This document shows positions 6,712 through 64,000 of a DNA stretch of 64,000 bases, in pieces. The position numbers and the translations under genes are program-made. The DNA lies in NCBI RefSeq assembly GCF_000737315.1, contig NZ_JMCB01000024.1, positions 62,001-126,000 of the forward strand, given 5' to 3'. Numbering within the stretch: position 1 is the stretch's first letter; each line of letters begins with the position of its first letter. Source of the DNA: Hyalangium minutum (GTDB lineage: Bacteria; Myxococcota; Myxococcia; Myxococcales; Myxococcaceae). Under the pieces are notes generated by a model that was not told the DNA's origin, did no database searches, and saw only the letters and a program-made list of their open reading frames with translations.

Positions 6712-7445
6712 GCGAGCTCGCCGATGAGCTGGCGCACCATGCTCGGCCCGAGCACATGAAGGAGCTCGCTGCGGGGAAGGTGGGCGAGTGGAAAGAGCGT
6801 GCCAAGGAGGCGGTGATGCACAGGACCCAGGAAGTGAAGGACAAGGTAGACACCCCGCGCGGCTGGAGCCTCCTGGGCGCCCTGATTGGAGCAGGCGTGG
6901 GCGGCATCCTCATGAAGAAGGCGTTTGCGATGCGCGAGGAGCGACCCATCGGCGTGCACGGAGGCACTCCCGCCGCGGGCGTGAGCGGTGACATCAGCGC
7001 CATGGGGGGCGACATGCCCATCGGGACCATCACGCACACCGACGTAAACCTGAAGGAGCGGGCCTCGGACGTGGTGCAGACGGTGAAGGGCCGGACGAGT
7101 GACTGGTTCGACCGGGCAGTGGAGAACCAACCGCTGATGCTGGCCCTGGGCACCATGGCGCTGGGCGTGCTCGCTTCGCTGATCATCCCCGTGTCCTTCC
7201 GCGAGCGCCAGCTCATCGAGCCGGCCAAGCGCAAGGCGCAGGAGGGGCTCGCCTCCATGGGCATGGGCAGTTCGGGCACGGGCAGCTCGTACCAAGGCGA
7301 CATCGGGGCCATGCGCAGTTCGACGCTGGGCGCCATGGACCGCTCCGAGGACCTGATGGGGGCCGAGCGTCCGGGCTTGGATGGCTCAGGCTCGCGCATC
7401 CCACCGCCACCGCCGCTGGATGACGTGTCGACGAAGATTCACTGA
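6657..7445 (+). CDS. DUF3618-like membrane protein
   Basis: AAGGAGG RBS then ATG 6657 (MGEQDHALHEVAAARARMSELADEL), two hydrophobic anchors (..NQPLMLALG..). Confidence 0.7.
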   Translation: MGEQDHALHEVAAARARMSELADELAHHARPEHMKELAAGKVGEWKERAKEAVMHRTQEVKDKVDTPRGWSLLGALIGAGVGGILMKKAFAMREERPIGVHGGTPAAGVSGDISAMGGDMPIGTITHTDVNLKERASDVVQTVKGRTSDWFDRAVENQPLMLALGTMALGVLASLIIPVSFRERQLIEPAKRKAQEGLASMGMGSSGTGSSYQGDIGAMRSSTLGAMDRSEDLMGAERPGLDGSGSRIPPPPPLDDVSTKIH

Positions 7446-7528
7446 GAGCCGCTCATAGGCTCCAGGGACCACCGCGTGCGGGGCCAATCGCCCTTGAGGA
7501 GTTTGACTCGCCTCGAGGGCTCTGCCAT

Positions 7529-8779
7529 GTGCGGCGCGTGCTCCCGCCCGAACACCCCTCCGCGTTTCGCGAGCCACCTCCTGGCCCGGTGGTGGCGTTC
7601 ATCCTGAGGCTGGGCCAGGCCCTCCACCAATACGGTACGCCGGCCCACCGCCTGGAGGATCAGCTCCACCAGGTGTCGGAGCGCTTTGGCGTGGCCGCTC
7701 GCTTCTTCTCCACGCCCACGTCCATCTTCGCCTCGTTCGGCCCGCCCGAGGCGCTCCAGACCGGACTCATCCGGGTGGAGCCCGGACAGATGGACCTGGA
7801 GCGGCTGACGCTGCTGGATGGGCTCGCGCATGAGGTCATCCAAGGGAAGATCACCCCCGAGCAGGGCGCCGAGCGGGTGGAGTTCATCCTCCGAGCGCCG
7901 CCTCGCTATGGGCGCGCCATCACGCTGCTCTGCTGGATGCTGGCGGCGGGCGCGGCGGCGCGGCTGTTCGGTGGGGGCCTGCGAGAGATTGGCGTGGCGG
8001 GGCTGAGCAGCCTCGCCATCGGCGTGCTGGATCAGCTCACGGATCGCAGCCCTCGGGCGGCGCGGGTGCTGGAGCCGGTGGCTGCGGTGCTGGCTTCGGC
8101 CCTGGCCGTCACGGCGGCGAGCGTCCTGGGCCCGCTGTCCGTCCAGGTGGCCACGCTGTCGGGGCTCATTGTCCTGCTACCGGGGCTCGGGCTGACGGTG
8201 GCCATCAACGAACTGGCCTCGCGCCACCTCATCTCCGGCGCCTCCCGGCTCACGGCCGCGGCGCTCGTGTTCCTCCAGCTCATCTTCGGCGTCGCGCTGG
8301 GGCAACGGCTGGCCGAGGTACTGCCGCTGCCACCGCTCGCCCCACCTCCCGCGCCGCTGCCGTTCTGGACGGTGGGGGTCTCCCTGGTGGTGGTGGCGCT
8401 CGCGGTGAACGTGCTCTTCCGGGCGCGTCCCGCGGACATCGTGTGGATCGTGGCGGCGGGAGCCCTGGCCTTCGGTGGGGCGCGGCTCGGAGCCCGAGGG
8501 TTGGGCGCGGAGCTGGGAGCCTTCGTGGGGGCGCTGCTGCTCGGCATGGCGAGCAACGCGCTGGCCCGGGTGCGCAACAGGCCGTCCGTCGTCACCATCG
8601 TCCCCGGGATGATGCTGCTGGTGCCGGGGAGCTTGGGCTTCCGCAGCCTGGAGTCTCTGCTGGCACGAGACGTCGTCGCCGGCGTAGGTACGGCCTTCTC
8701 CATGCTGCTGGTGGCAGTGGCCATCGCCGCGGGCCTGCTCTTCGCCAACGCGCTGGTGCCCTCGCGCCGGGTGCTCTGA
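7529..8779 (+). CDS. thrE: Threonine/serine exporter family (ThrE) membrane protein
   Basis: LGQALHQYGTPAHRLED, FFSTPTSIF, LLPGLGLT..INEL and LLVPGSLG motifs; about 10 TM segments. Exact start uncertain. Confidence 0.85.
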   Translation: MRRVLPPEHPSAFREPPPGPVVAFILRLGQALHQYGTPAHRLEDQLHQVSERFGVAARFFSTPTSIFASFGPPEALQTGLIRVEPGQMDLERLTLLDGLAHEVIQGKITPEQGAERVEFILRAPPRYGRAITLLCWMLAAGAAARLFGGGLREIGVAGLSSLAIGVLDQLTDRSPRAARVLEPVAAVLASALAVTAASVLGPLSVQVATLSGLIVLLPGLGLTVAINELASRHLISGASRLTAAALVFLQLIFGVALGQRLAEVLPLPPLAPPPAPLPFWTVGVSLVVVALAVNVLFRARPADIVWIVAAGALAFGGARLGARGLGAELGAFVGALLLGMASNALARVRNRPSVVTIVPGMMLLVPGSLGFRSLESLLARDVVAGVGTAFSMLLVAVAIAAGLLFANALVPSRRVL

Positions 8780-8832
8780 AAGCTATTTCCGAGGAGCTGC
8801 CCAACGTGCGGCTCGACAGCGATGCCTTGAAT

Positions 8833-8850
8833 TACCTGCATATGCAGGTA
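8833..8850. promoter_or_regulatory. Perfect 18-bp palindrome TACCTGCATATGCAGGTA, probable repressor operator
   Basis: Seen directly, 40 nt upstream of the hydrolase ATG (8890) and followed by TTGAC; a MarR gene lies just downstream of the hydrolase. Confidence 0.6.
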
Positions 8851-8889
8851 TATTGACGGGCCTGCCGTTCCTTCCCCAGGAGCCTTCGT

Positions 8890-10041
8890 ATGAAGCGCCG
8901 TGACCTGTTCCTCGGAGTGAGCGTTCTGCTGCTGGGTTGCGCATCGGCACGGCCTCCCGTGACAGAGCCCACCGCAGCCATCTCGACGGCGGCGCCGTTC
9001 AGCGCCACCTCCGAGCTGGCCGTGCAACAAGGCGATGCGGTCTTCGCCAACCATCGGCTCCACAATGGGATGACGCTGCCGGAACTCCGCATCCACTACG
9101 CGACGGCCGGAACTCCGCGCCGGGACGCAACCGGTGCCGTGACCAACGCGGTGTTGCTCCTGCATTGGACGGGTTCGAGCGGCGAGGTGCTTCGGAGCAA
9201 GCCATTCGTCGACGCGCTGTTCGCCCCAGGCAAGCCGCTCGACGCGACGAAGTACTACCTCATCTTCCCGGACAGCCTCGGGCATGGGCGCTCCACCAAG
9301 CCCAGTGACGGCCTCCGAGCCCGGTTCCCCGCCTACGGCTACCGGGACATCGTCGAACTCCAGCACCGGCTCGTCACGGAGACGCTCGGCATCCCTCGCC
9401 TCCACGCCATCGTGGGCCTCTCCATGGGCGGGATGAACGCCTGGCTCTGGAGCGAGCTGTACCCGGACGATGTGGAGGCGGTGATGCCCATCGTCTCGCT
9501 GCCCACGCGCGTCTCGGGCCGCAACCTCCTCTGGCGCCGCTTCGTCACCCATCAGATCCGCAATGACCCGGACTGGAGAGGGGGCGACTACACGGCTCCG
9601 CCTCGCGGCTGGTGTGAGGCGTTTCCTGTCTTCCGCATGCTGCTCGACGGAGTGCCCCACCTCCAGGAGACGATCCCCCATGCGGCTGCGGCGGATGCCT
9701 TCGTTCAGGAGGCCATCACCCAAGCGGCCCGAATGGATGCGAACGACATCCTGTACTCGCTTGAGTCGTCGGCCGACTATGACCCGGAGCCCGCCCTCAG
9801 GGACATCAAGGCCAAGGTCTTCGCGCTCAACTTCTCGGATGACGAGTTCAACCCTGTCTCGCTGGGCACGCTGGAGCGCCTCATGCCGCGCGTGAAGCGA
9901 GGGCGCTTCGTGATCCAACCTGGACACGGAGGCTCGTACGGCCACTTCACGCAAGCCCACCCCGAGCAGTGGGCACGGCATGTCGCGGACTTCATGGCTT
10001 ACGTCGAGGAATCCCCCCAGACGGCAGTTCAGAACGAGTGA
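8890..10041 (+). CDS. Exported alpha/beta hydrolase, homoserine O-acetyltransferase (MetX)-like family, probable lipoprotein
   Basis: Lipobox LLGC; LLLHWTG, DSLGHGRS, GLSMGG nucleophile elbow, DDEFNP Asp and GHFT His. Confidence 0.82.
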   Translation: MKRRDLFLGVSVLLLGCASARPPVTEPTAAISTAAPFSATSELAVQQGDAVFANHRLHNGMTLPELRIHYATAGTPRRDATGAVTNAVLLLHWTGSSGEVLRSKPFVDALFAPGKPLDATKYYLIFPDSLGHGRSTKPSDGLRARFPAYGYRDIVELQHRLVTETLGIPRLHAIVGLSMGGMNAWLWSELYPDDVEAVMPIVSLPTRVSGRNLLWRRFVTHQIRNDPDWRGGDYTAPPRGWCEAFPVFRMLLDGVPHLQETIPHAAAADAFVQEAITQAARMDANDILYSLESSADYDPEPALRDIKAKVFALNFSDDEFNPVSLGTLERLMPRVKRGRFVIQPGHGGSYGHFTQAHPEQWARHVADFMAYVEESPQTAVQNE

Positions 10042-50766: not shown

Positions 50767-51525
50767 TCAGCCTGGAGTGACGCGCCCGCCGATCTCCGGG
50801 AAGCGCTCGTAGGTCCGCAAGAGCGCTTCTAGATGGGCGGGGTTGTCAAGATCGAGCGGTGCATCCGTGAGCTGCACCACCCACCCGCCCGACGCCGTGC
50901 GCCGCGCTCGCGTGAGCAGCTCGGCGTCGCGGGCCGGGTCCGGGAACCCGATCACTTGCGCGGCAGCGGCGGACCAGAAGTTCAGCCAACCAAGGGAATA
51001 GGGAATCTCTGGCGAGCGGATGTGGTCGAAGAGCTTCAGGGCGGGCAACCCCCGGCGTGGGGATGGCGGTCCTTCCAGCGTGGGTGCTGTCTGATACGCG
51101 ATGTCCAGCGCAGCGGCATCCGGCGTGGCATGCCCCCAGAACGCGCGTGCGCCCTCCGCTACGCCCTCCAGCATCTCCGCCGCTGCCGCGATAACGGCCT
51201 CGTCTAGTGGCAACTTCGCATGAACGTGGAGTTGCGGCTGACCGCCCGGGCTGAGGATTGCTGGGCTCTGTCTCCCCGCAACCGTCACAGGGTAGCTCTC
51301 GTCGCCATTGCACAGGAGCGGGAGCTTTCCGCGTCTTGTCGCCTCAACGAGCCAAGCGTCGCGTTGCGGTAACTCGATGGGGCGCCCTCCTTCGCCCACT
51401 TCCCACTTCAGGCGCAAGCCGGGCAGCGCCCGTTCCATACCACTGACGACAGCAAGTGTGCGGCCGTCATTGGCCACGAGCGCTGGCGCGTAGACGGCCA
51501 GAATGAGGCGATTTCGAGTGGTCAT
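50767..51525 (-). CDS. Putative immunity protein (myxobacterial DUF5953-like)
   Basis: ATGA-coupled to the upstream toxin; LGWLNFWS..AA..IGFPDP.RD.ELL..RTASGGWVVQLTD.PLDLDNPAH..ALL..YERFPEIGGR resembles immunity families paired with REase toxins. Confidence 0.7.
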   Translation of the reverse strand: MTTRNRLILAVYAPALVANDGRTLAVVSGMERALPGLRLKWEVGEGGRPIELPQRDAWLVEATRRGKLPLLCNGDESYPVTVAGRQSPAILSPGGQPQLHVHAKLPLDEAVIAAAAEMLEGVAEGARAFWGHATPDAAALDIAYQTAPTLEGPPSPRRGLPALKLFDHIRSPEIPYSLGWLNFWSAAAAQVIGFPDPARDAELLTRARRTASGGWVVQLTDAPLDLDNPAHLEALLRTYERFPEIGGRVTPG

Positions 51526-52250
51526 CGTTTGCATCCCGTGACGACGATCTTGAGGGAGGGAAGGACCTTGAGCAGCGCGTCTTTGTGCTCTTGGGTGCTC
51601 ACCCCAACAACGAAGTCGTATCCACAGGCCCGCGCAGCGGCAAGTTCCTCGGTCAGTTGCGCCACCTCCTTCTCAATCTCCTGCTCCTGGATAAAGTCAG
51701 GGTAGGTGTCAAATCGGTGGGTCTTGATCTCCCACAGCACACGCACGCCGACTTGCAGCGCATCGAAGCGCTCACCGCCCACGAATACGTCCATGCCGGG
51801 ATAACGGTTGGGCGGAAACTTATCGGCGCACTCGTTATGCGGGACATCCCCGCCCGCGTGCGGCACCAGGATGGGCTGGCACTCCGGGCGGCGCTCCAGC
51901 GTCACTGGGGGAGGCGGGGCGCTCCTGTTCGCTCGGGGCCCCTCCGGTGCGGGGTTCGCCTCCGGATCCTGCGAGGCCCGAGGAGCGTCTCCGGCCCAAA
52001 GGCCCGGCTCCCGGGTGGGCGGCAAGACGCGCTTGTGCGGGCTCCGAGGTAGGGGCTGGGGGCGAACCTGCCCTGGCTGCCCGGGGGTGGGGAGGCCCGT
52101 GCCGGGCACAGCGGGTGGGCGTACGGGCGCCCAAGCGTAGGTCTCAGGCGCCTCTTGAGTCTCAGGCGCCTTTTGAGAAGTGGCGCACCCAGCGACGACT
52201 CCGGCAGCGGCAACGGCTTGGAGGAGTGCGCTGCACGTTCGGAAGTTCAT
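51522..52250 (-). CDS. Lipoprotein polymorphic toxin with C-terminal PD-(D/E)xK-like nuclease domain (DUF6310-like)
   Basis: AAAGGA RBS; lipobox VAGC; Pro-rich linker; FDALQVGVRVLWEIKTH; immediately followed by the immunity-like gene. Confidence 0.72.
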   Translation of the reverse strand: MNFRTCSALLQAVAAAGVVAGCATSQKAPETQEAPETYAWAPVRPPAVPGTGLPTPGQPGQVRPQPLPRSPHKRVLPPTREPGLWAGDAPRASQDPEANPAPEGPRANRSAPPPPVTLERRPECQPILVPHAGGDVPHNECADKFPPNRYPGMDVFVGGERFDALQVGVRVLWEIKTHRFDTYPDFIQEQEIEKEVAQLTEELAAARACGYDFVVGVSTQEHKDALLKVLPSLKIVVTGCKR

Positions 52251-52328
52251 TCCACGTCCTTTCACCGAAGAGAGGGCGGTGCGGGTCAAGGCTGGGCCAC
52301 TTCCCCTCGGGAGTCTGCCAGCATGCGC

Positions 52329-52374
52329 TGACAGCTTGAGCCGGGGGCGCGCGCGTCTGACAGCTCCAGCTCGG
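52329..52374. repeat. Two CTGACAGCT repeats; the second contains GACAGCTCCAGCTCGG, identical to 50739-50754
   Basis: Exact 16-nt direct repeat seen on both sides of the toxin/immunity pair. Confidence 0.55.
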
Positions 52375-52458
52375 GCCGGGGCACGGTGCAGGGCATGTGA
52401 TCTGAAGGGGCGCAGGCGGTGTCCACCACGGTCGCTGGCAGCGTGGAGCGCGGTCACT

Positions 52459-52509
52459 TGACGCGTCAGCCCTTCCGGTTGACACGTCAGCCCTTCGGTC
52501 GACGTGTCA
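52459..52509. promoter_or_regulatory. Second triple TGAC-N2-GTCA array (21/20-nt spacing)
   Basis: TGACGCGTCA 52459, TGACACGTCA 52480, CGACGTGTCA 52500; linkers GCCCTT(C)CGGT repeated. Confidence 0.55.
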
Positions 52510-52589
52510 AAGCGCGTGCTTCGCATGGCCCGGTGCAGGCGGCGCTCACTCCACGCCGCCTGCGTCCGTCAGACAGGGCCTACGGTGGC

Positions 52590-55437: not shown

Positions 55438-56763
55438 TCAGGAACGCCGCCCGAGGAACTGTGGATCGCTCCAGTCCCACAGCCGCTCGGGGTGGAAGTC
55501 CAGGTCCACCGGGGTGCTGTTCCACTGGTACACCTTGCGCGAGCTGGCACCGTGGATGTGGATGGCCAGGCTCACCAGCGCCAGCACCGCGAAGGTGGCC
55601 GTGAGCGGACGCCGCGCCCGCTCTCCGCTCCAACCCAGCTCGCGCACCACCGGCACCAGGAAGAAGAAGAGGTAGGGCACCATGTCCGTGAAGAAGCGCG
55701 GCCCATACGAGTGCCCTGCCCACCAGTGCGGAAAGGAGGAGATGGCCAGCCAGTGGAGGACGAAGGCCCCCAGCAGGAAGCCGTGCAGCCGCGTGAAGGT
55801 GCCCGCCCGGCGCTCCAGCACCAGCCCCCAGAAGCTCAGCAGCACCAGCGGCGTGAACACCAACAGCCCACGGGCCGGCGAGACGAGGTTGCCCGCGAGC
55901 GCCTCGGCGAAGAGCGCCAGGTTCGTCTCCAGCCGCTGCGAGTCGTAGTACGGCGCCAGCACCGAGCCGTAGTGGGCCAGGTTCAGCGCGCACCATGGCA
56001 CCGCCACCACCAGGGCCCCCGTGCAGAACTTCACCGCCTGCCGCGGGTGCGTCCACAGCACGTACACGGACAGCAGCAGCACGGATACCCCGTTGGTGGG
56101 CCGCATGACGTACGACAGCGCGAGCGGCAGCCCCGCCCACCCCGCATAGCGCGGCTCCGCCCGCGCCTTCACCAGGCACAGCAGCACCCACGACAGGCAC
56201 AGCATGGAGGGCCCGTGCTGCCACAGGGCTCGGCTCGCCGTGGACAGCGCCGGTGTGCAGAAGACAAAGGCTGTGGAGAGCAGCAGCGCCCGGGGACGCG
56301 ACAGCGTCTGTCTCCCCAGCGCGTACATCACCACCCCCGCCAGCGCTACCATCACCGAGGCGAACAAGCGCTGCGGATCATTCCAGTCCTCCAGCGGCAG
56401 CGCTCCCGTGGCGTCGTAGAGGGCCCGCCAGCGCGCCACCGGACGAGAGAAGGAAGGATGTACGTGGCCCAGGGGCTCGGCCAGGCGCGCGGCCCCGTCC
56501 GTGAGCGCTACCAGCGGTAGCGCCGCCAGCGAGGGCCCCAAGGGGAAGAAGTTGTAGAGGTGCCCCTCCCGCTCGTAGAGCCCGTGGCGGTACGTCTCGA
56601 AGGTGGGCGCGTACTCGTCCAGGTTGATGTTCCCCTCGCGCAGCAGGGAGACCGTGGTCGGCAGCGTCAGCTTCGAATCGAACGGCGTGTTGACGGGGAA
56701 GAGCGCCAGCAGCGTCAAGTAGACCGCGAACAGCAGCGCCCGCTCCCGGAGGATTGGCAGCAT
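55438..56763 (-). CDS. Polytopic membrane GT-C-type glycosyltransferase
   Basis: About 10 TM; first-loop Asp (PFDSK), TASRALWQH, YVMRPTN, GNLVSPARGL..FTP, WWAGHSYGPRF. Confidence 0.7.
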   Translation of the reverse strand: MLPILRERALLFAVYLTLLALFPVNTPFDSKLTLPTTVSLLREGNINLDEYAPTFETYRHGLYEREGHLYNFFPLGPSLAALPLVALTDGAARLAEPLGHVHPSFSRPVARWRALYDATGALPLEDWNDPQRLFASVMVALAGVVMYALGRQTLSRPRALLLSTAFVFCTPALSTASRALWQHGPSMLCLSWVLLCLVKARAEPRYAGWAGLPLALSYVMRPTNGVSVLLLSVYVLWTHPRQAVKFCTGALVVAVPWCALNLAHYGSVLAPYYDSQRLETNLALFAEALAGNLVSPARGLLVFTPLVLLSFWGLVLERRAGTFTRLHGFLLGAFVLHWLAISSFPHWWAGHSYGPRFFTDMVPYLFFFLVPVVRELGWSGERARRPLTATFAVLALVSLAIHIHGASSRKVYQWNSTPVDLDFHPERLWDWSDPQFLGRRS

Positions 56764-56828
56764 GGCGGAGCCACATTATCCCGCCCGCCATGTTCCAGAA
56801 GAAGTTCATCCCGAGTACCGTGGCGCGG

Positions 56829-57827
56829 ATGGAATCACAGCGCCTCGCGCCGGAGCAGCAGGCCTGGTTGGCTGAAAACCTCACGCGAGGCGTCCCTCCG
56901 GCGCTCCTGACGGAGCGTCTGGTTCAGGAGGGCGTGGAGTCCGCCACGGCACGGGCGGCGGTAGAGGCCACCCGTCATCACCCAGCGGTGGTGGCGGCCA
57001 CGCGTGTCACCCAGCGGCAGGGCGAGCTGCGCGCATTGTTCGAGACGTACGCCGCGCTGCACCGCCAGTCCGGGTGGAACCAGCGCCTGGAGCGCCGGGC
57101 GGACCTCTCCGCGAGCGAGTTCTTCGAGCGCTACTACTACGCACACCGGCCCGTCATCCTCCAGGGACGGATGAAGGACTGGCCCGCCATGGACAGCTGG
57201 CGTCCCGAGCGCTTAGCCGAGCGTTTTGGGGACATTCCGGTGGAGGTGATGGCCGGCCGGGAGAGCGATCCGAGCCACGACATCGCCCCTGAGCGCTTTC
57301 GCTCGGTGATGCCCCTGCGAGACTTCATTCAGCGGCTGCTGAGCGGCGGTCCCACCAATGATCTCTACCTCACCGCGCGCAACTTCGCCCTGGAGCGGCC
57401 GGAGCTGCGCGTCATGTTCGAGGATCTGCGCCCGCTCGAAGGGCTCTTGCGCCCAGTCCGCGACCGGACCGTGAAGCTCTGGGTGGGCCCCGCGGGGACC
57501 CTCACCTCTCTGCATCACGATCTGTCCAACGTCCTGTTCGCCCAGGTTCACGGGCGGAAGCACTTCAAGCTCATCCCGTCCTTCGAGCTCCACTGTCTCT
57601 ACAATCACCACGGCGTCTGGAGCGAGGTGGACGCCACACGCCCCGACTTCGAGCGGTTCCCCGCCTACCGCGATGTGGATCTGGTGGAGGCCGTGCTCGA
57701 ACCGGGAGAGCTGCTCTTCATCCCGGTGGGCTGGTGGCACTGGGTCCACGCTCTCGACGTGAGCGTGTCGGTGTCGTTCCAGACGTTCGAGGTTCCGGGC
57801 GGTAACACGCCCTGGCGGCTGTTGTGA
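56829..57827 (+). CDS. JmjC/cupin_8 Fe(II)/2OG hydroxylase, paralogue 1
   Basis: YY..RPVIL, WPAM..W, LWVGPAGT.TSLHHD (HxD), KHFKL, PVGWWHWV (His). Start is 56829 or 56790. Confidence 0.88.
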   Translation: MESQRLAPEQQAWLAENLTRGVPPALLTERLVQEGVESATARAAVEATRHHPAVVAATRVTQRQGELRALFETYAALHRQSGWNQRLERRADLSASEFFERYYYAHRPVILQGRMKDWPAMDSWRPERLAERFGDIPVEVMAGRESDPSHDIAPERFRSVMPLRDFIQRLLSGGPTNDLYLTARNFALERPELRVMFEDLRPLEGLLRPVRDRTVKLWVGPAGTLTSLHHDLSNVLFAQVHGRKHFKLIPSFELHCLYNHHGVWSEVDATRPDFERFPAYRDVDLVEAVLEPGELLFIPVGWWHWVHALDVSVSVSFQTFEVPGGNTPWRLL

Positions 57828-57834
57828 GCGTCCC

Positions 57835-58002
57835 TCAGCGCGCGAGCGGCGGCTTGGAGGGCGGAGCGGTCGGCTTGCGCTGGGTGCGCTCGAACGTCTC
57901 CTCGCCGGGGTTCGGCGAAGGATTCGGGACGATGAACGGATTCGGGACGATCATCCAGTTGTTCCGGCCCTGCTTCGACGACGCATCACCGTTGCTCGAC
58001 AT
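57835..58002 (-). CDS. 55-aa peptide with tandem IVPNP/SPNP repeats (candidate precursor/substrate peptide)
   Basis: GAGGA RBS; strongly GC3-biased codons; fills the gap between JmjC genes; 14-nt direct repeat at 18-nt period (57920-57951). Confidence 0.65.
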   Translation of the reverse strand: MSSNGDASSKQGRNNWMIVPNPFIVPNPSPNPGEETFERTQRKPTAPPSKPPLAR

Positions 58003-58049
58003 GAAGTCCTCGCTTCGAAAGCCGCTCCTCCTCATATCATATCCGCGCC

Positions 58050-59090
58050 ATGCCGGTGCGTGAGTGGATCGCCGAGAACCTCGCCCTGGGCGTCCCCCGG
58101 GAGGCGTTGCTCTCCTCGCTGGTCCAGGGGGGCTTGGCGCCTGAGGTAGCGCGCGCGGAGTTGGAAGCCGCCGCGGCCCACCCCGCGGTGCGCGGGGCCT
58201 CGCGTCACCTCGCGCGCCGGGCGCACCTGAGAGCCCTCCTGGACACCTACAGCGCGCTCTACCGGCAGTCCCAAGCGGGACAGGGTGTCGAGCGCCGAGC
58301 CCAGCTCGCCCCCGCCGAGTTCTTCGAGCGCTACTACTTCCAGAATCGGCCCGTGGTCATCGAAGGACTGCTCGAGGACTGGCCAGCGCTGCGGCGCTGG
58401 TCGCCCGGGTTCTTCGCGGACCGCTTCGGAGACGCGCAGGTCGAGGTGATGGCCGGGCGGGATGCGGAGGCCCAGCCGGATCTCCACGTCTCCCGCCTGA
58501 GGACCTCCCTGTCGATGCGCGAGTACGCCGCGCGGATCGAAGCCACCCAAGAGTCGAACGACATCTACATGGTGGCGCGTAACAGCCTGCTGAAGCGCGA
58601 GGCGTTCCAGCCCTTGCTGGAGGACATCCGAGCGCCGAAGGGCTTCATCCGTCCCGACATCCACGTCCCCGACAGCGTCCACCTGTGGTTCGGCCCGGCG
58701 GGAACCTGGGCCGCCCTGCATCACGACCACCTCAACGTGCTCTTCTGCCAGGTGCTCGGACGCAAGCGCTTCCGGCTCATCCCCTCCTTCGAGTTGCCTC
58801 GCGCCTACAACCACCAGGGGCTGTACAGCGCCGTGGATCCCCGGACGCCGGATCCCGCACGCTTCCCCGAGTTCCAGCACGCCACGGTGCTGGACTTCGT
58901 GGTGGGCCCGGGCGATGCGCTGTTGATTCCCGTGGGGTGGTGGCATGCCGTGCACGCCCTGGATGTGAGCATCTCCGTGACGTTCGTGAGCTTTGATTTG
59001 CCCGAGCGGAACACGTACTGGCGCAACTGCTGGATCGGCCCGGACCCGGACAGCGAGGGCGCGGCCATGAGAAAGGTGGAGACTCCATGA
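58050..59090 (+). CDS. JmjC/cupin_8 Fe(II)/2OG hydroxylase, paralogue 2
   Basis: LWFGPAGTWAALHHD, KRFRL, PVGWWHAV; shares the N-terminal W.xENL..G helical domain. Confidence 0.88.
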   Translation: MPVREWIAENLALGVPREALLSSLVQGGLAPEVARAELEAAAAHPAVRGASRHLARRAHLRALLDTYSALYRQSQAGQGVERRAQLAPAEFFERYYFQNRPVVIEGLLEDWPALRRWSPGFFADRFGDAQVEVMAGRDAEAQPDLHVSRLRTSLSMREYAARIEATQESNDIYMVARNSLLKREAFQPLLEDIRAPKGFIRPDIHVPDSVHLWFGPAGTWAALHHDHLNVLFCQVLGRKRFRLIPSFELPRAYNHQGLYSAVDPRTPDPARFPEFQHATVLDFVVGPGDALLIPVGWWHAVHALDVSISVTFVSFDLPERNTYWRNCWIGPDPDSEGAAMRKVETP

Positions 59091-60010
59091 CCCAGGACTC
59101 GGGCAAAGACCCTTCCGCGCTCTCCGCCGAGTGGAGGGAGTGGCTCGTCGAGAACCTGCTGCTCGGGGTGGAGGCGGAGGAGCTGGTGGAGGTGTTGGTG
59201 AAGGGCGGGGTGGACGCGGAGCTGGCTCGCTCGGCCCTGCTGGCCGAGACGCAGGATCCTCACTTCCAGGGCGTCGTGCGGGTGGCCCAGATGCAGCGGA
59301 AGATGGAGACGCTCCTGGACGTCTACGCGGAGTTCTTCCGGCAGGCGGGCGCGCACCAGCAGGTGGACCGCCACGTGGCACTGCCCGCAGAGGCTTTCTT
59401 CGAGCGCTACTACTTTCGCAACCGGCCGGTGGTGATCCAGGGCGCGCTCACGGAGTGGACGGCACGGGGCGGGTGGACACTGGCCCGCATCACCGAGCAG
59501 CTCGGCCCGGTGGCTCGCCCGGGAGAGCCCCTCTCCGTGTCCTTGCTGGAGCGCGCGGAATGGAAGCCGCTGCTGGAGGAGCTCCACCCTCCTCGCGGAT
59601 ACGCCGCCGAGGACCTTCAGGCCAGCGCTCCGCGGCTCTGGCTCGAGCCCGCTGGGGCAGAGCTCCCCTTGGGCCCGCTGCGGAAGAACCTGCTGCGCTG
59701 TCAGCTCTCGGGAAGGAGTGTCCTGCAGCTCGTCCCCTCGTTCGAGCTCCATCGCATCACACGGGAAGAGGCGGGGGGCAGCACCGAGCAGGAGGGAGCC
59801 GCGCCTCCCACCCCCGCGCTGCGACTGACGGTGGAACTGGCGGCGGGCGAGTTGCTGCTACTCCCCGTGGGGTGGTGGTACCGCCTCCATGCGCCGGAGG
59901 ACAGCCTCGCGGTGACCTTCGAGGGGTTCGCTCTCCGTGAACCCAACACCGTCTGGAAGGAGCCTGCCTCGGAGACAGCGCCCTCGGGCCCTCCACCGAG
60001 AGTGCGCTAA
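59087..60010 (+). CDS. Degenerate JmjC paralogue 3 lacking metal ligands
   Basis: Same N-terminal domain and RYYFRNRPVV, but LPLGP replaces LHHD and PVGWWYRL replaces PVGWWH; ATGA-coupled to paralogue 2. Confidence 0.75.
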   Translation: MTQDSGKDPSALSAEWREWLVENLLLGVEAEELVEVLVKGGVDAELARSALLAETQDPHFQGVVRVAQMQRKMETLLDVYAEFFRQAGAHQQVDRHVALPAEAFFERYYFRNRPVVIQGALTEWTARGGWTLARITEQLGPVARPGEPLSVSLLERAEWKPLLEELHPPRGYAAEDLQASAPRLWLEPAGAELPLGPLRKNLLRCQLSGRSVLQLVPSFELHRITREEAGGSTEQEGAAPPTPALRLTVELAAGELLLLPVGWWYRLHAPEDSLAVTFEGFALREPNTVWKEPASETAPSGPPPRVR

Positions 60011-60169
60011 GGCTTCTTCTCGGCCTCTAGAGACGGAGCCCGGCGGGGGTCAAGGCACCCAAGCAAGCGTCGCTCCGGGGTCCCCACGCGGACATGCGTA
60101 TGCCGGGCGAGCCTCTGCTTTACTGGGCACACCGCCAGGGCGACGGCTATGCCCGCCCAGAGGCCCGTC

Positions 60170-63100
60170 ATGATCACCATCCCAGGCTACACCCTTCTTG
60201 GAGCCATCAAGTCGACTGGCGCCAACCTGCTGTTCCACGCCGTCCGCGACTCGGACGGCCTGCCTCTGATCTTGAAAACCCCGGTGGCACCCTCGCCCGG
60301 CCCCCGGGAGCGCGAGCGGTACCGCCGCGAGTTCGGCATCCTGCAGCGGCTCCGGGACGTGCGGGGGGTGACCCACGTCCACACCTGCGAGCAGATCCAG
60401 GATCGTCCAGTGCTCTTGCTCGAGGAGGTCGAGGGTGCCCCCCTGTCCGAGCACACCGGCAAGCCGCTCGAGGTGCTGCGCGCCCTGGAGCTGAGCATTG
60501 CCCTGGCCTCGACGCTCGCAGAGCTCCACCGCCGCGGCATTGTCCACAAGGACCTGAAGCCCTCCAACGTCATCCTCACGCCCAAGGGCGAGACGCGCCT
60601 CATCGACTTCGGCAGCGCCAGCCTTCAGCTCGTGGAGCACGTGGATGCGCTACAGGGCACCCTCGTCGAGGGCACCCTGCCGTACATGTCCCCGGAGCAA
60701 ACCGGGCGCATGAACCGCTCGGTGGACTACCGGACGGACCTGTACTCGCTGGGCATCACCCTCTACGAGCTGCTCACCGGCAGCCGCCCCTTCCACGGGC
60801 GCGACGTGCTGGAGTGGTTCCACGCGCACATGGCGCTGGCGCCACAGCCGCTCACCGAGCGGGTCCCCGGCCTGCCGCCCGTGCTGTCCGCCATCGTCCT
60901 GAAGCTGCTGGCCAAGGTGGCCGAGGAGCGCTACCAGAGCGCCGAAGGACTGAAGGCCGACCTGGAGCGGTGCCAGGACACCCTGAGCCGGGGCCAGCGG
61001 GAGGACTTCCTTCCCGGACTCCACGACTACCCGACGCGCTTCCAGCTGCCGCAGCGGCTCTATGGAAGGGACGCGCAGGCCGCCACGTTGCGCCAGCGCC
61101 TCGAGCGCATCGCCGTCGAGGGCCGGCCCGAGCTGGTCCTCGTGAGCGGATACTCGGGCATCGGGAAGTCCGCGGTGGTGCATGAGCTGCACAAGCCGGT
61201 GGTGCGCCAGCGCGGCTTCTTCCTCAGCGGCAAGTTCGACCAGTTCCAGCAGGACATCCCCTACTCCACCCTGGCCCAGGCCATCCGGGGTCTGACGCAG
61301 CAACTGCTCACGGGCACGGACTCGGAGCTCCTCCGGTGGTCGGAGTATCTGCACGAGGCCTGGGAGGGACAGGGGCAGATGTTGGTGGACATCGTGCCCC
61401 AGCTCGAGCTCGTCGCCGGCCCGCAGCCCACGCTCCCGGAGATGCCGGCCTCCGAGGCGCAAAACCGCTTCAACCGCATGTTCCGCCGGTTCCTCGGCGT
61501 CTTCGCCACCCCCGAGCACCCGCTGGTCCTCTTCCTGGACGACTTGCAGTGGGCGGACATGGCCACCCTCCAGCTGCTCCAGCACCTGCTCACCCACACC
61601 GAGACGCCGCCCATGCTGGTGATCGGTGCCTACCGCGACAATGAGGTGAGCCCCTCACACCCGCTGGCGCTCACGCTCGTGGAGCTGCGGAAAGCCGGGG
61701 CGCGGATGACGGACCTGCGGCTGGAGCCGCTGAGCTTCGAGGACGTTCAGCAGCTCGTGGCCGACACCCTGCCCGGCGCGGGCCTGGCGGTGGTCGAGCC
61801 ATTGGCGGCGCTGGCCCGGGCGAAGACAGGCGGCAACCCTTTCTTCCTCCTCCAGTTCCTGCTCACGCTCAACCAGGACGGCCTGCTGGTGCGCACGCCC
61901 GATGGCACCTGGCGCTGGAATGCCGAGGCCGTCCGCGCCAAGGGCTACTCCGACAACGTCGTAGACTTCATGGTGGGCAAGCTGCGCCAGCTGCCCACGG
62001 ACACGCAGCACCTGCTGCGGCTGGCAGCCTGTGTGGGCAACGCCTTCCCGCTGCGCATCCTCCTCCTCATCTCCGGCTTGGAGGACTCGGGGCAGGTGGA
62101 GCATCGGCTCGAGCCCGCGCTCCAGGAGGGCCTGGTGGCGCTCACCGGCTCGGAGAACTACCGCTTCCTCCACGACCGCATCCAGCAAGCGGCCCACGCC
62201 CTCATTCCCCTGGAGGAGCGCAAGGCCGTGCACCTGCGCATTGGCCGCCTGCTGCTGGCCAGCCTGTCTCCCGAGGAACTCCAGGAGCGGCTCTTCGACG
62301 TGGTGGGCCAGCTCAACGCCGGAGCGGAGCTGCTGACGGACCCGGCGGAGCGCCACCGCGTCGCAGGCCTGAACGCGGGCGCGGGCGCCAAAGCCCAGGC
62401 CTCCACCGCGTTCCGCTCGGCGGCGGCCTACTTCGCGGTGGCCTTCCAGCTCATCCCCAAGGACCCTTGGGAGGTAGACCCCACGCTGGCCTTCAAGGTC
62501 CGGCTGGATCAGGCGCGTTGCGAGTCCATGCTCGGCCATGCCACCGAGGCGCTCCGTCTGGTGGAGCAGCTGCGGCCTCACGCGCGCACGCGGCTCCAGC
62601 TCTCGGCGCTCTACCGCCTCAAGAGCGAGCTCCACATGGCCCGGGGCCAGGTCCATGCCGCCCGCGACAGCCTCCTGGAGTGCCTGTCGCTGCTGGGCAT
62701 GCCCATGCCCGCGCACCCCTCCTGGGAAGAGGTGGTGGCGGCCAATGAGGAAGTCTGGGCACTGATGGGCAGCCGCTCCGTCGACAGCCTGATCCATCTG
62801 CCGCGGATGAACGACCCGGACATGGACGCGGTGATGAGCGTGTTCCCCGCCATGTACGCGCCGGCGCTCCTCACGGACAACAACCTGCTCATCCTTCACG
62901 TCTGCCGGCTCGTCTCGCTCAGCCTCCGGCATGGCAACTCGGCCGCCTCCATCTACGGCTACTCCACCTATGGACTGGTGGTGGGCCACGCCTTCGGGCG
63001 CTACCACGAAGGGTACGCCTTCGCTCAGCTCTCCCTGGCCCTCGTCGAGCGCTACGCGGATCTGGCGCCCTGCCGGCTGCAGGCGACCTACAGCTTGGGG

Positions 63101-64000
63101 CCCATCAGCTATTGGACCCAGCCGCTCGCCCTCTCGATCGATCTGTTCCGGCAGGCCTTCCAGCAGGCGCTTCAGGCCAGCGACGTCCAGCTCGCCTGCT
63201 ACTGCTGTGATCAGCTCGTCACGGTCCGCCTCTCGCTCGGGCACGAGCTGGAGGAGGTCTACCAGGAGTCCGTGGCCCGCTTGGACTTCCTGCGCAAGGT
63301 CCGCTACCAGGAGGTGCAGGACATCGTCCAGTTCACCCAGGCCTACGTCCAGCAGCTCCGGGGGCTCACCCTCTCGTTCAACACCCTGACTTGCAATGAG
63401 TTCAACGAGGAGGCCTTCGAAGCCGCGCTGACGCCCCAGAGCATGACCTTGATGACGTGCTGGTACTGGATCATCAAGATGCAGTCGCGCTTCATGTGCG
63501 GCGACTACGAGCGGGCGCTCCAAGCGGGAGACAAGGCCGCCAGCCTGCTGTGGAGCTCCATGGGCTTCATCGAGATGGTGGACCTCCACCTCTTCCGCGC
63601 CCTGAGCCTGGCGGCCCACTTCCCTGAAATGGGCGCCGAAGCACGGGCGGCGGCCCTCGAGCAGCTCCGCAAGCACCACCGGCAGATGGCGGAGTGGGCG
63701 AGCAACTCCCCCCCGAACTTCCGCGCGCCCGAGCGGCTGGCCTTCGCGGAGCTGTCGCGCGTCGCGGGCGATGAGGACGCGGCATTGCTCGCGTACGACG
63801 AGGCGCTCCAGGCCGCCCGCGAGTACGGCTACATCCAATACGCGGCCATGGCCAGCGAGCTCGCCGCCCGCTTCTGGTTCAAGCGGCGCGTGCCCACCAT
63901 TGCCGAGACCTACGCGCGCAAGGCCCTCGAGGCGTACCTGCGCTGGGGCGCGGGCGGGAAGGCGCAGCAGCTGGCCGCGCAGTGGCCTCACGTCGCCGCG
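60170..64000 (+). CDS. Multidomain Ser/Thr kinase - AAA ATPase sensor protein, 3'-truncated by the window edge
   Basis: Not in the ORF track (no stop in the window). Read from ATG 60170: HKDLKPSN, DFG, GTLPYMSPEQ, Walker A GYSGIGKS, Walker B FLDDLQWAD, and WGA.GKAQQL near the end. Confidence 0.92.
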   Translation, partial: MITIPGYTLLGAIKSTGANLLFHAVRDSDGLPLILKTPVAPSPGPRERERYRREFGILQRLRDVRGVTHVHTCEQIQDRPVLLLEEVEGAPLSEHTGKPLEVLRALELSIALASTLAELHRRGIVHKDLKPSNVILTPKGETRLIDFGSASLQLVEHVDALQGTLVEGTLPYMSPEQTGRMNRSVDYRTDLYSLGITLYELLTGSRPFHGRDVLEWFHAHMALAPQPLTERVPGLPPVLSAIVLKLLAKVAEERYQSAEGLKADLERCQDTLSRGQREDFLPGLHDYPTRFQLPQRLYGRDAQAATLRQRLERIAVEGRPELVLVSGYSGIGKSAVVHELHKPVVRQRGFFLSGKFDQFQQDIPYSTLAQAIRGLTQQLLTGTDSELLRWSEYLHEAWEGQGQMLVDIVPQLELVAGPQPTLPEMPASEAQNRFNRMFRRFLGVFATPEHPLVLFLDDLQWADMATLQLLQHLLTHTETPPMLVIGAYRDNEVSPSHPLALTLVELRKAGARMTDLRLEPLSFEDVQQLVADTLPGAGLAVVEPLAALARAKTGGNPFFLLQFLLTLNQDGLLVRTPDGTWRWNAEAVRAKGYSDNVVDFMVGKLRQLPTDTQHLLRLAACVGNAFPLRILLLISGLEDSGQVEHRLEPALQEGLVALTGSENYRFLHDRIQQAAHALIPLEERKAVHLRIGRLLLASLSPEELQERLFDVVGQLNAGAELLTDPAERHRVAGLNAGAGAKAQASTAFRSAAAYFAVAFQLIPKDPWEVDPTLAFKVRLDQARCESMLGHATEALRLVEQLRPHARTRLQLSALYRLKSELHMARGQVHAARDSLLECLSLLGMPMPAHPSWEEVVAANEEVWALMGSRSVDSLIHLPRMNDPDMDAVMSVFPAMYAPALLTDNNLLILHVCRLVSLSLRHGNSAASIYGYSTYGLVVGHAFGRYHEGYAFAQLSLALVERYADLAPCRLQATYSLGPISYWTQPLALSIDLFRQAFQQALQASDVQLACYCCDQLVTVRLSLGHELEEVYQESVARLDFLRKVRYQEVQDIVQFTQAYVQQLRGLTLSFNTLTCNEFNEEAFEAALTPQSMTLMTCWYWIIKMQSRFMCGDYERALQAGDKAASLLWSSMGFIEMVDLHLFRALSLAAHFPEMGAEARAAALEQLRKHHRQMAEWASNSPPNFRAPERLAFAELSRVAGDEDAALLAYDEALQAAREYGYIQYAAMASELAARFWFKRRVPTIAETYARKALEAYLRWGAGGKAQQLAAQWPHVAA

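Follow-up and report, generated by a model that had tools for sequence, protein, structure and literature searches.

A conserved 55-residue peptide gene among JmjC oxygenase paralogs of Hyalangium minutum, a candidate substrate of its neighbors

Can a frame of 55 codons, lying antisense between two paralogous oxygenase genes in a GC-rich genome, be a genuine gene, and if it is, what does its product have to do with the enzymes on either side? The question is raised by a stretch of 64,000 nt of the H. minutum contig NZ_JMCB01000024.1 (the window), in which an ORF of 55 codons plus stop on the minus strand (57835..58002) sits in the 222-nt gap between the JmjC genes J1 (ORF 56754-57827) and J2 (58050-59090), both on the plus strand. 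The peptide quoted in the first-pass annotation is the exact minus-strand translation of this ORF. It is convergent with J1, with 7 nt separating the two stops, and divergent from J2, whose ATG (58050) is 47 nt away, as had been claimed. Size alone makes the ORF unremarkable, as 8 kb of this 68% GC sequence contain 59 ORFs of at least 40 aa; it is conservation that lifts it above chance. The GC3 of the peptide frame (0.875) is host-like, as first described, and compares with 0.855–0.888 in the three adjacent JmjC genes. An overlapping plus-strand ORF (57824-58063) has a GC3 of 0.81, and since the two frames share their third codon positions, GC3 and composition cannot decide the strand. An alternative upstream ATG (58035) would give a 66-aa version and is present only in the window and its nearest relative; thus, ATG 58002 is the conserved start. 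The ribosome binding site proposed earlier is a Shine-Dalgarno-like GAGGA (58007..58011, minus strand) 4 nt 5′ of this ATG, and it is retained as GAGGA in four of five close orthologs and as GGAG in the fifth. The gene had been described as hidden, which does not wholly hold: gene calls already exist for a 66-aa product here and for a 55-aa product on a metagenome contig from Logan, and orthologs are annotated as hypothetical proteins, including by NCBI in Cystobacter ferrugineus.

A scan of reference genomes with J2 gave six loci. Three of them (Hyalangium versicolor, Citreicoccus inhibens and a Hyalangium MAG) have a minus-strand ORF 5′ of the J2 homolog whose product carries a VPNP motif and a PP(S/T)(K/T)PP tail. 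Further orthologs were found in an NCBI assembly (L012), in Myxococcus qinghaiensis and Archangium violaceum, and on a soil metagenome contig (L019). Together with the window, the Logan contig (L008) and C. ferrugineus, these make up ten distinct sequences from ten Myxococcota lineages, which we refer to as class 1. Neither Pfam nor NCBIfam has a model that fits the peptides, and NCBIfam lacks a match for the J proteins as well.

The pattern of substitutions indicates which strand is under selection. In a comparison of four close orthologs counted in the peptide frame, 23 variable columns are third codon positions, 10 are first and 3 are second. Read as the antisense frame, the same columns give 23, 3 and 10 on positions 3, 1 and 2, a pattern unlike that of coding-sequence evolution, so the minus frame fits and the plus frame does not. 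In these four orthologs the peptide frame never shows more amino-acid differences than the antisense frame, and mostly it shows fewer. For five close orthologs, dN/dS values of 0.11–0.49 were obtained in the peptide frame, and of 0.22–0.52 in the antisense frame where they could be computed. The positions of start, stop and Shine-Dalgarno sequence are also kept among orthologs. Conservation of the frame in relatives was the check that the first-pass annotation had proposed, and the minus frame is conserved in ten lineages under purifying selection, with stops instead hitting the rival plus frame. That 79-aa plus-strand ORF looks translationally coupled, as its GTG start overlaps the J1 stop as GTGA and its 3′ end reaches 14 nt into J2. 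It was rejected as a gene due to internal stops in two relatives (L094 and L006), a stop at the first codon in L012 and the wrong substitution pattern; it is an artefact that arises from third positions common to both frames.

If the minus-strand ORF were untranslated, its conservation would have to come from the plus ORF, from an antisense or regulatory RNA, or from an intergenic element of a J1-J2 operon. This reading can point to a plus frame that is open in the window, that has a GC3 of 0.81 through the shared third positions and that runs over the J1 stop at one end and over the J2 start at the other. However, that frame is interrupted in the three relatives just named, the substitution order 3>1>2 is compatible with the minus frame only, and the motif is held at the peptide level despite low DNA identity, and even across an inversion in a second peptide class described below. 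Rfam gave no match in 57300-58600 at E≤1, and in relatives it is the minus-strand gene that gene callers and NCBI have annotated. We regard an untranslated ORF as scarcely credible, and it is very likely that the minus-strand ORF is a real, selected small gene. Even in a GC-rich genome, a short ORF that lies antisense between paralogs can thus be a genuine gene.

The ten-peptide alignment shows which parts of the product are constrained. Its fixed columns spell V-P-x-P-x-P, with N or D at x and with I or V ahead of the motif, and a C-terminal P-T-x-P-P-x-x-P-P is invariant. [IV]-P-N-P is found one or more times in each class-1 peptide. The core of the window peptide reads IVPNP-F-IVPNP-SPNP (residues 18-32; 57907..57951, minus strand) and contains a tandem duplication. 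An 18-nt duplication had been reported, and the duplication is real, with an exact repeat of 14 nt (57920-57933/57938-57951); the 18 nt are the spacing of the copies. Since the duplication is common to five lineages it must be old, and in all four relatives that have it the second unit is VPDP. The idea of a multi-core precursor did not hold up in the relatives, which have one or two VPNP units at spacings of 6, 11 or 17 residues, and no recognizable or repeated cleavage motifs flank these units in the class-1 relatives. Similarly, the N-terminal region, read earlier as a leader, is short and variable (8 residues in Citreicoccus), and only the proline-rich C-terminal tail is conserved. This tail (P-T-A-P-P-S-K-P-P, residues 44-52; 57847..57873, minus strand), to which related tails exist in the class-2 peptides and in J3, is a candidate docking element, and judging by its sequence it could be a follower.

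A consensus scan of 57500-58400 detected neither a sigma-70 promoter nor an intrinsic terminator. The divergent gap does contain a near-palindromic AT-rich box (58035..58041), TATCATA on the plus strand and TATGAT on the minus strand, which is a possible −10 element for the peptide gene, J2 or both. TATCAT had been placed 8 nt upstream of the J2 ATG; the hexamer is there (58035-58040) at a spacing of 9 nt. An AT-rich hexamer is found in all ten class-1 loci, 30–37 nt 5′ of the peptide ATG (22 nt in L019), and wherever the J2 start is unambiguous it lies 7–14 nt from the J2 ATG on the opposite strand. Its peptide-strand sequence is TATGAT in the window and TATAAT in Archangium. The box may be the −10 element of the peptide gene, whose transcript would then have a leader of some 25 nt that includes the Shine-Dalgarno sequence, and it fits a leaderless J2 transcript equally well. 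As the stops of J1 and the peptide gene are so close together, overlapping antisense transcription is likely, and this convergence over 7 nt without a terminator may limit expression of the peptide. Two relatives (L007 from C. ferrugineus, and L001) have an insertion of 24–26 nt between the J1 stop and the peptide stop that is missing in the window. The insertion in L007 carries an inverted repeat, GCGCTCC/GGAGCGC, a possible bidirectional terminator hairpin.

What are the neighboring enzymes? J1 (56829..57827, plus strand) is a JmjC/Cupin_8 Fe(II)/2-oxoglutarate (2OG) oxygenase (Pfam Cupin_8, 3.7e-44) in which alignment shows HHD...GRK...WWH to be intact; its ORF opens at a TTG (56754), and the ATG at 56829 is backed by orthologs. 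J2 (58050..59090, plus strand) also has an intact triad, matches Cupin_8 at 1.8e-41 and has JMJD5 as its best PDB match (6.6e-29). An AlphaFold2 model of J2 (pLDDT 91) shows a five-helix N-terminal domain (residues 1–78) followed by the JmjC barrel, and in Foldseek searches the barrel is closest to human JMJD5 (TM 0.87), followed by JMJD7, TYW5, FIH and JMJD6. JMJD5, JMJD7, FIH and JMJD6 are protein side-chain hydroxylases, while TYW5 acts on tRNA. With the triad, the lysine and the modeled fold all in place, J1 and J2 are predicted to be active JmjC/Cupin_8 Fe(II)/2OG oxygenases. The third paralog, J3 (59087..60010, plus strand), still matches Cupin_8/JmjC in Pfam and is identified by alignments and its position in the tree, and it is catalytically dead. 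HxD has become G-P-L, the lysine S and the distal histidine Y, and about 34 aa are deleted. HxD and the 2OG-binding lysine are absent in all five J3 orthologs examined and the distal histidine in four of the five, whereas LHHD, GRK and the distal histidine of WWH are all present in J1, J2 and J(c2), the clade of the enzymes paired with a second peptide class described below. In a neighbor-joining tree the J(c2), J1, J2 and J3 proteins separate cleanly into four clades, and the two peptide classes are each tied to a clade or clades of their own. The J3 start lies inside the J2 stop (ATGA, 59087-59090), and the same 4-nt overlap is seen in L007, L012 and L094, suggesting coupled translation of J2 and J3 and possibly a J2-J3 complex.

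The N-terminal helical domain gave no Pfam match, and a library-wide search with it returned almost only the N-termini of such enzymes. The modeled domain, with five helices and no strands, lacks the fold of an RRE, which has three strands and then three helices (PMC12710340). One protein (P0163, 387 aa) has the helical domain twice, and its catalytic part is a P4H-like 2OG oxygenase (PF13640). This fusion suggests that the domain could be a portable module for substrate recruitment. Two further proteins with multiple matching stretches (P0134 and P0172) were rejected as repeats of the domain; they are low-complexity artefacts (FG-GAP, formin). The C-termini of J3 proteins are proline-rich, resemble the peptide tails and covary with them by lineage: ..ETAPSGPPPR in J3 against ..PTAPPSKPP in the peptide in the window, ..EPTPPPR against ..VPTPPPTTPP in M. 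qinghaiensis, and ..EPTPPPR against ..LPTPPPSTPP in A. violaceum. It is this likeness by lineage that leads us to propose the tail as a docking element.

The layout of J1 converging on the peptide gene, followed by J2 and J3, recurs in the ten lineages, and the J genes are the only flanking genes common to all eight class-1 loci compared. At every locus recovered by peptide look-up, a Cupin_8 gene lies within about 150 nt of the peptide gene, and over all loci examined a JmjC gene is found at 47–150 nt. The peptide gene is tightly and specifically linked to JmjC genes, as would be expected of the precursor of a modified peptide. A gene for a PMT_2 (protein mannosyltransferase-like) membrane protein lies divergent from J1 (55438-56763, minus strand), and a gene for a giant Pkinase-AAA_16 regulator lies 3′ of J3 (60149-64000, plus strand). 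The former was rejected as a member since it recurs only in the closest relative (L008). The latter and the trypsin-like protease genes of the window were rejected as well, since none of them was matched at the six loci that were compared. Conserved with the module, or present in the window, we found neither a protease nor an exporter nor an RRE domain.

A second and larger class of peptides emerged from a profile search. These class-2 peptides have 47–60 aa, with [HN]-V-K-x-x-Y-x-x-C followed by a basic proline-rich tail, and are annotated as hypothetical wherever the source names them. They occur in Myxococcus, Pyxidicoccus, Archangium, Cystobacter, Minicystis and Dactylosporangium, and they are encoded beside a single JmjC gene, that of the J(c2) clade. 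The orientation of the peptide gene to the enzyme gene is divergent in Cystobacterineae and co-directional in Dactylosporangium and Minicystis, and the peptide sequence is retained across this inversion (Myxococcus compared with Dactylosporangium). In Minicystis rosea (L011), six tandem small genes (6972-8156) encode variant VNVK..Y..CW peptides of 50–54 aa with a ..VPPL tail, and the array lies directly 5′ of, and co-directional with, one JmjC gene (8234-9244). In C. ferrugineus both modules are adjacent, giving four JmjC genes and two peptide genes; here the fourth JmjC gene and its own divergent class-2 peptide gene (MMTPAESPQHTSTEADDVNVKSNYVDCW...) occupy 9301-10544 of L007, beside the class-1 module. 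The window has no second, class-2 module.

On balance, we think it probable that the class-1 peptide serves J1 and J2 as their dedicated substrate or precursor and that J3 is a partner without catalytic activity. We infer that the minus-strand ORF is translated and that its 55-aa product is hydroxylated by the flanking JmjC-type Fe(II)/2OG oxygenases, J1 and J2 being the two active hydroxylases. J3, inactive and translationally coupled to J2, would probably be a scaffold or recognition subunit, and the PTxPPxxPP tail would dock either on the N-terminal helical domain common to the enzymes or on J3. Side chains in or near the VP(N/D)P core would be hydroxylated; our first guess is β-hydroxylation of Asn/Asp, with Arg/Lys or Pro as the other candidates. 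JMJD5, the closest solved relative, is an arginine hydroxylase and so gives no pointer to Asn. The hydroxylated peptide could then be a RiPP-like product, or a signal for the regulators that are linked to the module in relatives. Some observations count against a substrate. The N-terminal region is not a conserved leader, and neither a protease nor an exporter nor an RRE is conserved. The two peptide classes also share no obvious target residue, as N/D is missing from several Minicystis class-2 variants, and K, Y and C are missing from the class-1 peptides.

The lack of a common target residue also favors a different role, in which the peptide is a real small protein that stays unmodified and serves the JmjC enzymes as regulator, inhibitor, chaperone or adaptor. 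It might be a pseudo-substrate in the binding site for the proline-rich tail, for instance, or an unmodified ligand of TPR partners. The similar tail of J3 would fit here too, since the motif could be purely an element of protein-protein docking, and the module neighbors in relatives are signaling genes and not a protease or exporter. On the other hand, a tandem array of six variants in front of one enzyme gene, as in M. rosea, is characteristic of substrates or precursors and not of regulators, conservation is as strong in the central motifs as it is in the tail, and two active enzymes have been kept as separate clades specifically with class 1. We find such an unmodified regulator unlikely.

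Prolyl hydroxylases are known to act on proline-rich wall proteins, and by analogy the hydroxylases could act mainly on other proline-rich proteins, with the peptide as one, perhaps incidental, substrate. In soil metagenomes, distant homologs of the J proteins (36–46% identity) have upstream co-directional ORFs with extreme proline-rich repeats, namely VPHP, PTPV, PPHPTPPHEPPYP, IIPPMPPPQDSG and PTPTPTSK (L036 2779-3141; L062 3265-3729; L073 3191-3925; L078 2678-3877; L089 1-351; also L063, L030, L027 and L090). One of these ORFs has a lipoprotein-like signal. A proline-rich stretch lies within 600 nt upstream at 12 of 61 loci, an enrichment of about 2.3-fold over background, although this is a crude measure and GC-rich frames inflate proline. 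The fusion of the N-terminal domain to a P4H-like oxygenase in P0163 would also suit a broad substrate range. In repeat DNA, however, reading frames are ambiguous, and the close family is partnered without exception by a short peptide whose architecture is fixed. A broad substrate range of this kind seems to us improbable.

How does this locus relate to known systems? Two JmjC enzymes that act on ribosomal peptides have been described: BipG, an ornithine hydroxylase of the RiPP biphenomycin (PMC12707348), and CzlI, a Phe-to-Tyr hydroxylase of the RiPP curacozole whose activity depends on core-flanking sequences (PMC11575548). As in those clusters, a JmjC/cupin Fe(II)/2OG gene lies here beside a short ribosomal peptide; action on the peptide is known there, and we infer it here. 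The difference is that the JmjC enzyme is an accessory there, in clusters defined by an MNIO plus rSAM or by a YcaO cyclodehydratase, while here JmjC paralogs, two active and one dead, are the sole conserved enzymes, and the peptides belong to an unrelated family. Among the genes at 47–64 kb of the window, Pfam scans found no MNIO/rSAM and no YcaO cyclodehydratase. Action of JmjC enzymes on RiPP precursors is already known, and what differs here is that JmjC paralogs are the only conserved enzymes. In the literature on JmjC/cupin enzymes in RiPPs, Myxococcus and PF13621, we found no description of the peptide family or of its pairing with JmjC genes. The survey of bacterial JmjC neighborhoods by Iyer et al. 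(2010; PMC2938197), in those of its parts available to us, covers NRPS, ATP-grasp and halogenase contexts and not pairing with a peptide. Judged by its sequence, the locus has two of the generic features of a RiPP system, a selected short ORF and adjacent candidate modifying enzyme genes, and would be a candidate for a JmjC-defined RiPP-like or signaling-peptide system.

The JMJD5/JMJD7/FIH group provides the best sequence and structure matches of J2 and shares the HxD...H triad and the 2OG-binding lysine. Enzymes of this type hydroxylate C3 of Arg, C3 of Lys, or the β position of Asn/Asp/His in peptide segments. The bacterial enzymes differ from them in having only about 30% identity, an additional 78-residue helical domain and a dedicated peptide gene. 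Some RiPP systems pair an active enzyme with a non-catalytic recognition partner, such as the MNIO partner proteins or PqqD-like RREs. The dead J3, apparently coupled to the active J2, resembles such pairs and suggests that active and inactive proteins may handle the peptide as a complex. The difference is that J3 is a degenerate copy of the enzyme, and the N-terminal domain, unlike an RRE-type partner, is all-helical. If the peptide is hydroxylated by its neighbors, this would establish a RiPP-like family defined by JmjC oxygenases, which elsewhere are accessories, with an unusual set of active and dead paralogs and a C-terminal proline-rich recognition tail. Bacterial JmjC peptide hydroxylases would also gain a defined substrate to which they are paired genetically, a rarity of practical value to enzymology, and new hydroxylated peptides or peptide signals of myxobacteria would come within reach.

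The genes that accompany the module in some relatives bear on what the product might do. In loci of both classes there is a partner set consisting of an ECF sigma factor, a zf-HC2 anti-sigma factor and a TPR-CHAT protein of roughly 920 aa (L010 4085-10343; L006 2642-12460; L094 8307-12428; L004, L017, L018 and L019). ECF sigma, TPR anti-sigma and TPR-CHAT genes accompany the peptide gene in L004, L006, L010, L017 and L019. The zf-HC2 anti-sigma factor has one transmembrane segment, and the C-terminal region beyond it is presumably extracytoplasmic. The TPR-CHAT protein has an N-terminal transmembrane segment, and its residues from about 50 to 400 are homologous to the C-terminal region of the anti-sigma factor. 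A partner protein of 423 aa has so far been seen in class-1 loci only. In Archangium lipolyticum (L097 4925-8170), a class-2 peptide gene is followed by co-directional genes for a histidine kinase (His_kinase, PF06580) and a LytTR regulator, a layout reminiscent, by analogy, of peptide-pheromone cassettes. By tblastn, CHAT, ECF sigma, anti-sigma and the 423-aa partner are absent from the whole 64-kb window, and so are the histidine kinase/LytTR partners of the relatives. The partner genes elsewhere may be compatible with a locally regulated natural product or with a signal. Candidate readers of such a signal in relatives would be the ECF sigma factor with the TPR anti-sigma factor and TPR-CHAT protease, or the histidine kinase with LytTR.

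Peptide-signal cassettes with LytTR or with ECF sigma/anti-sigma factors are known from agr-type systems and from the control of microbisporicin by MibX/MibW. The histidine kinase and LytTR genes of L097 and the ECF/anti-sigma/CHAT genes of other relatives resemble these cassettes. The locus differs in that such regulators are absent from the window and an AgrB-like processing enzyme is missing; that the peptide is sensed at all is our supposition. The most far-reaching reading would combine these elements into a new, JmjC-defined class of ribosomal peptides of Myxococcota and some Actinomycetota, subject to O2/Fe/2OG-dependent hydroxylation by an assembly of active and dead JmjC proteins, whose product is a signal for the TPR anti-sigma/CHAT or histidine kinase/LytTR partners. 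We hold this extended reading only tentatively and would sooner expect it to need revision than to stand as a whole. If the signal part were true, it would be a bacterial counterpart of the FIH/HIF type of hydroxylation switching, acting on a dedicated peptide. As a minor observation, a DUF6310 and DUF5953 gene pair is located in the window at 50767-52526 (minus strand), and the same pair is found about 3 kb from the class-2 peptide gene of L097, which may be a coincidence.
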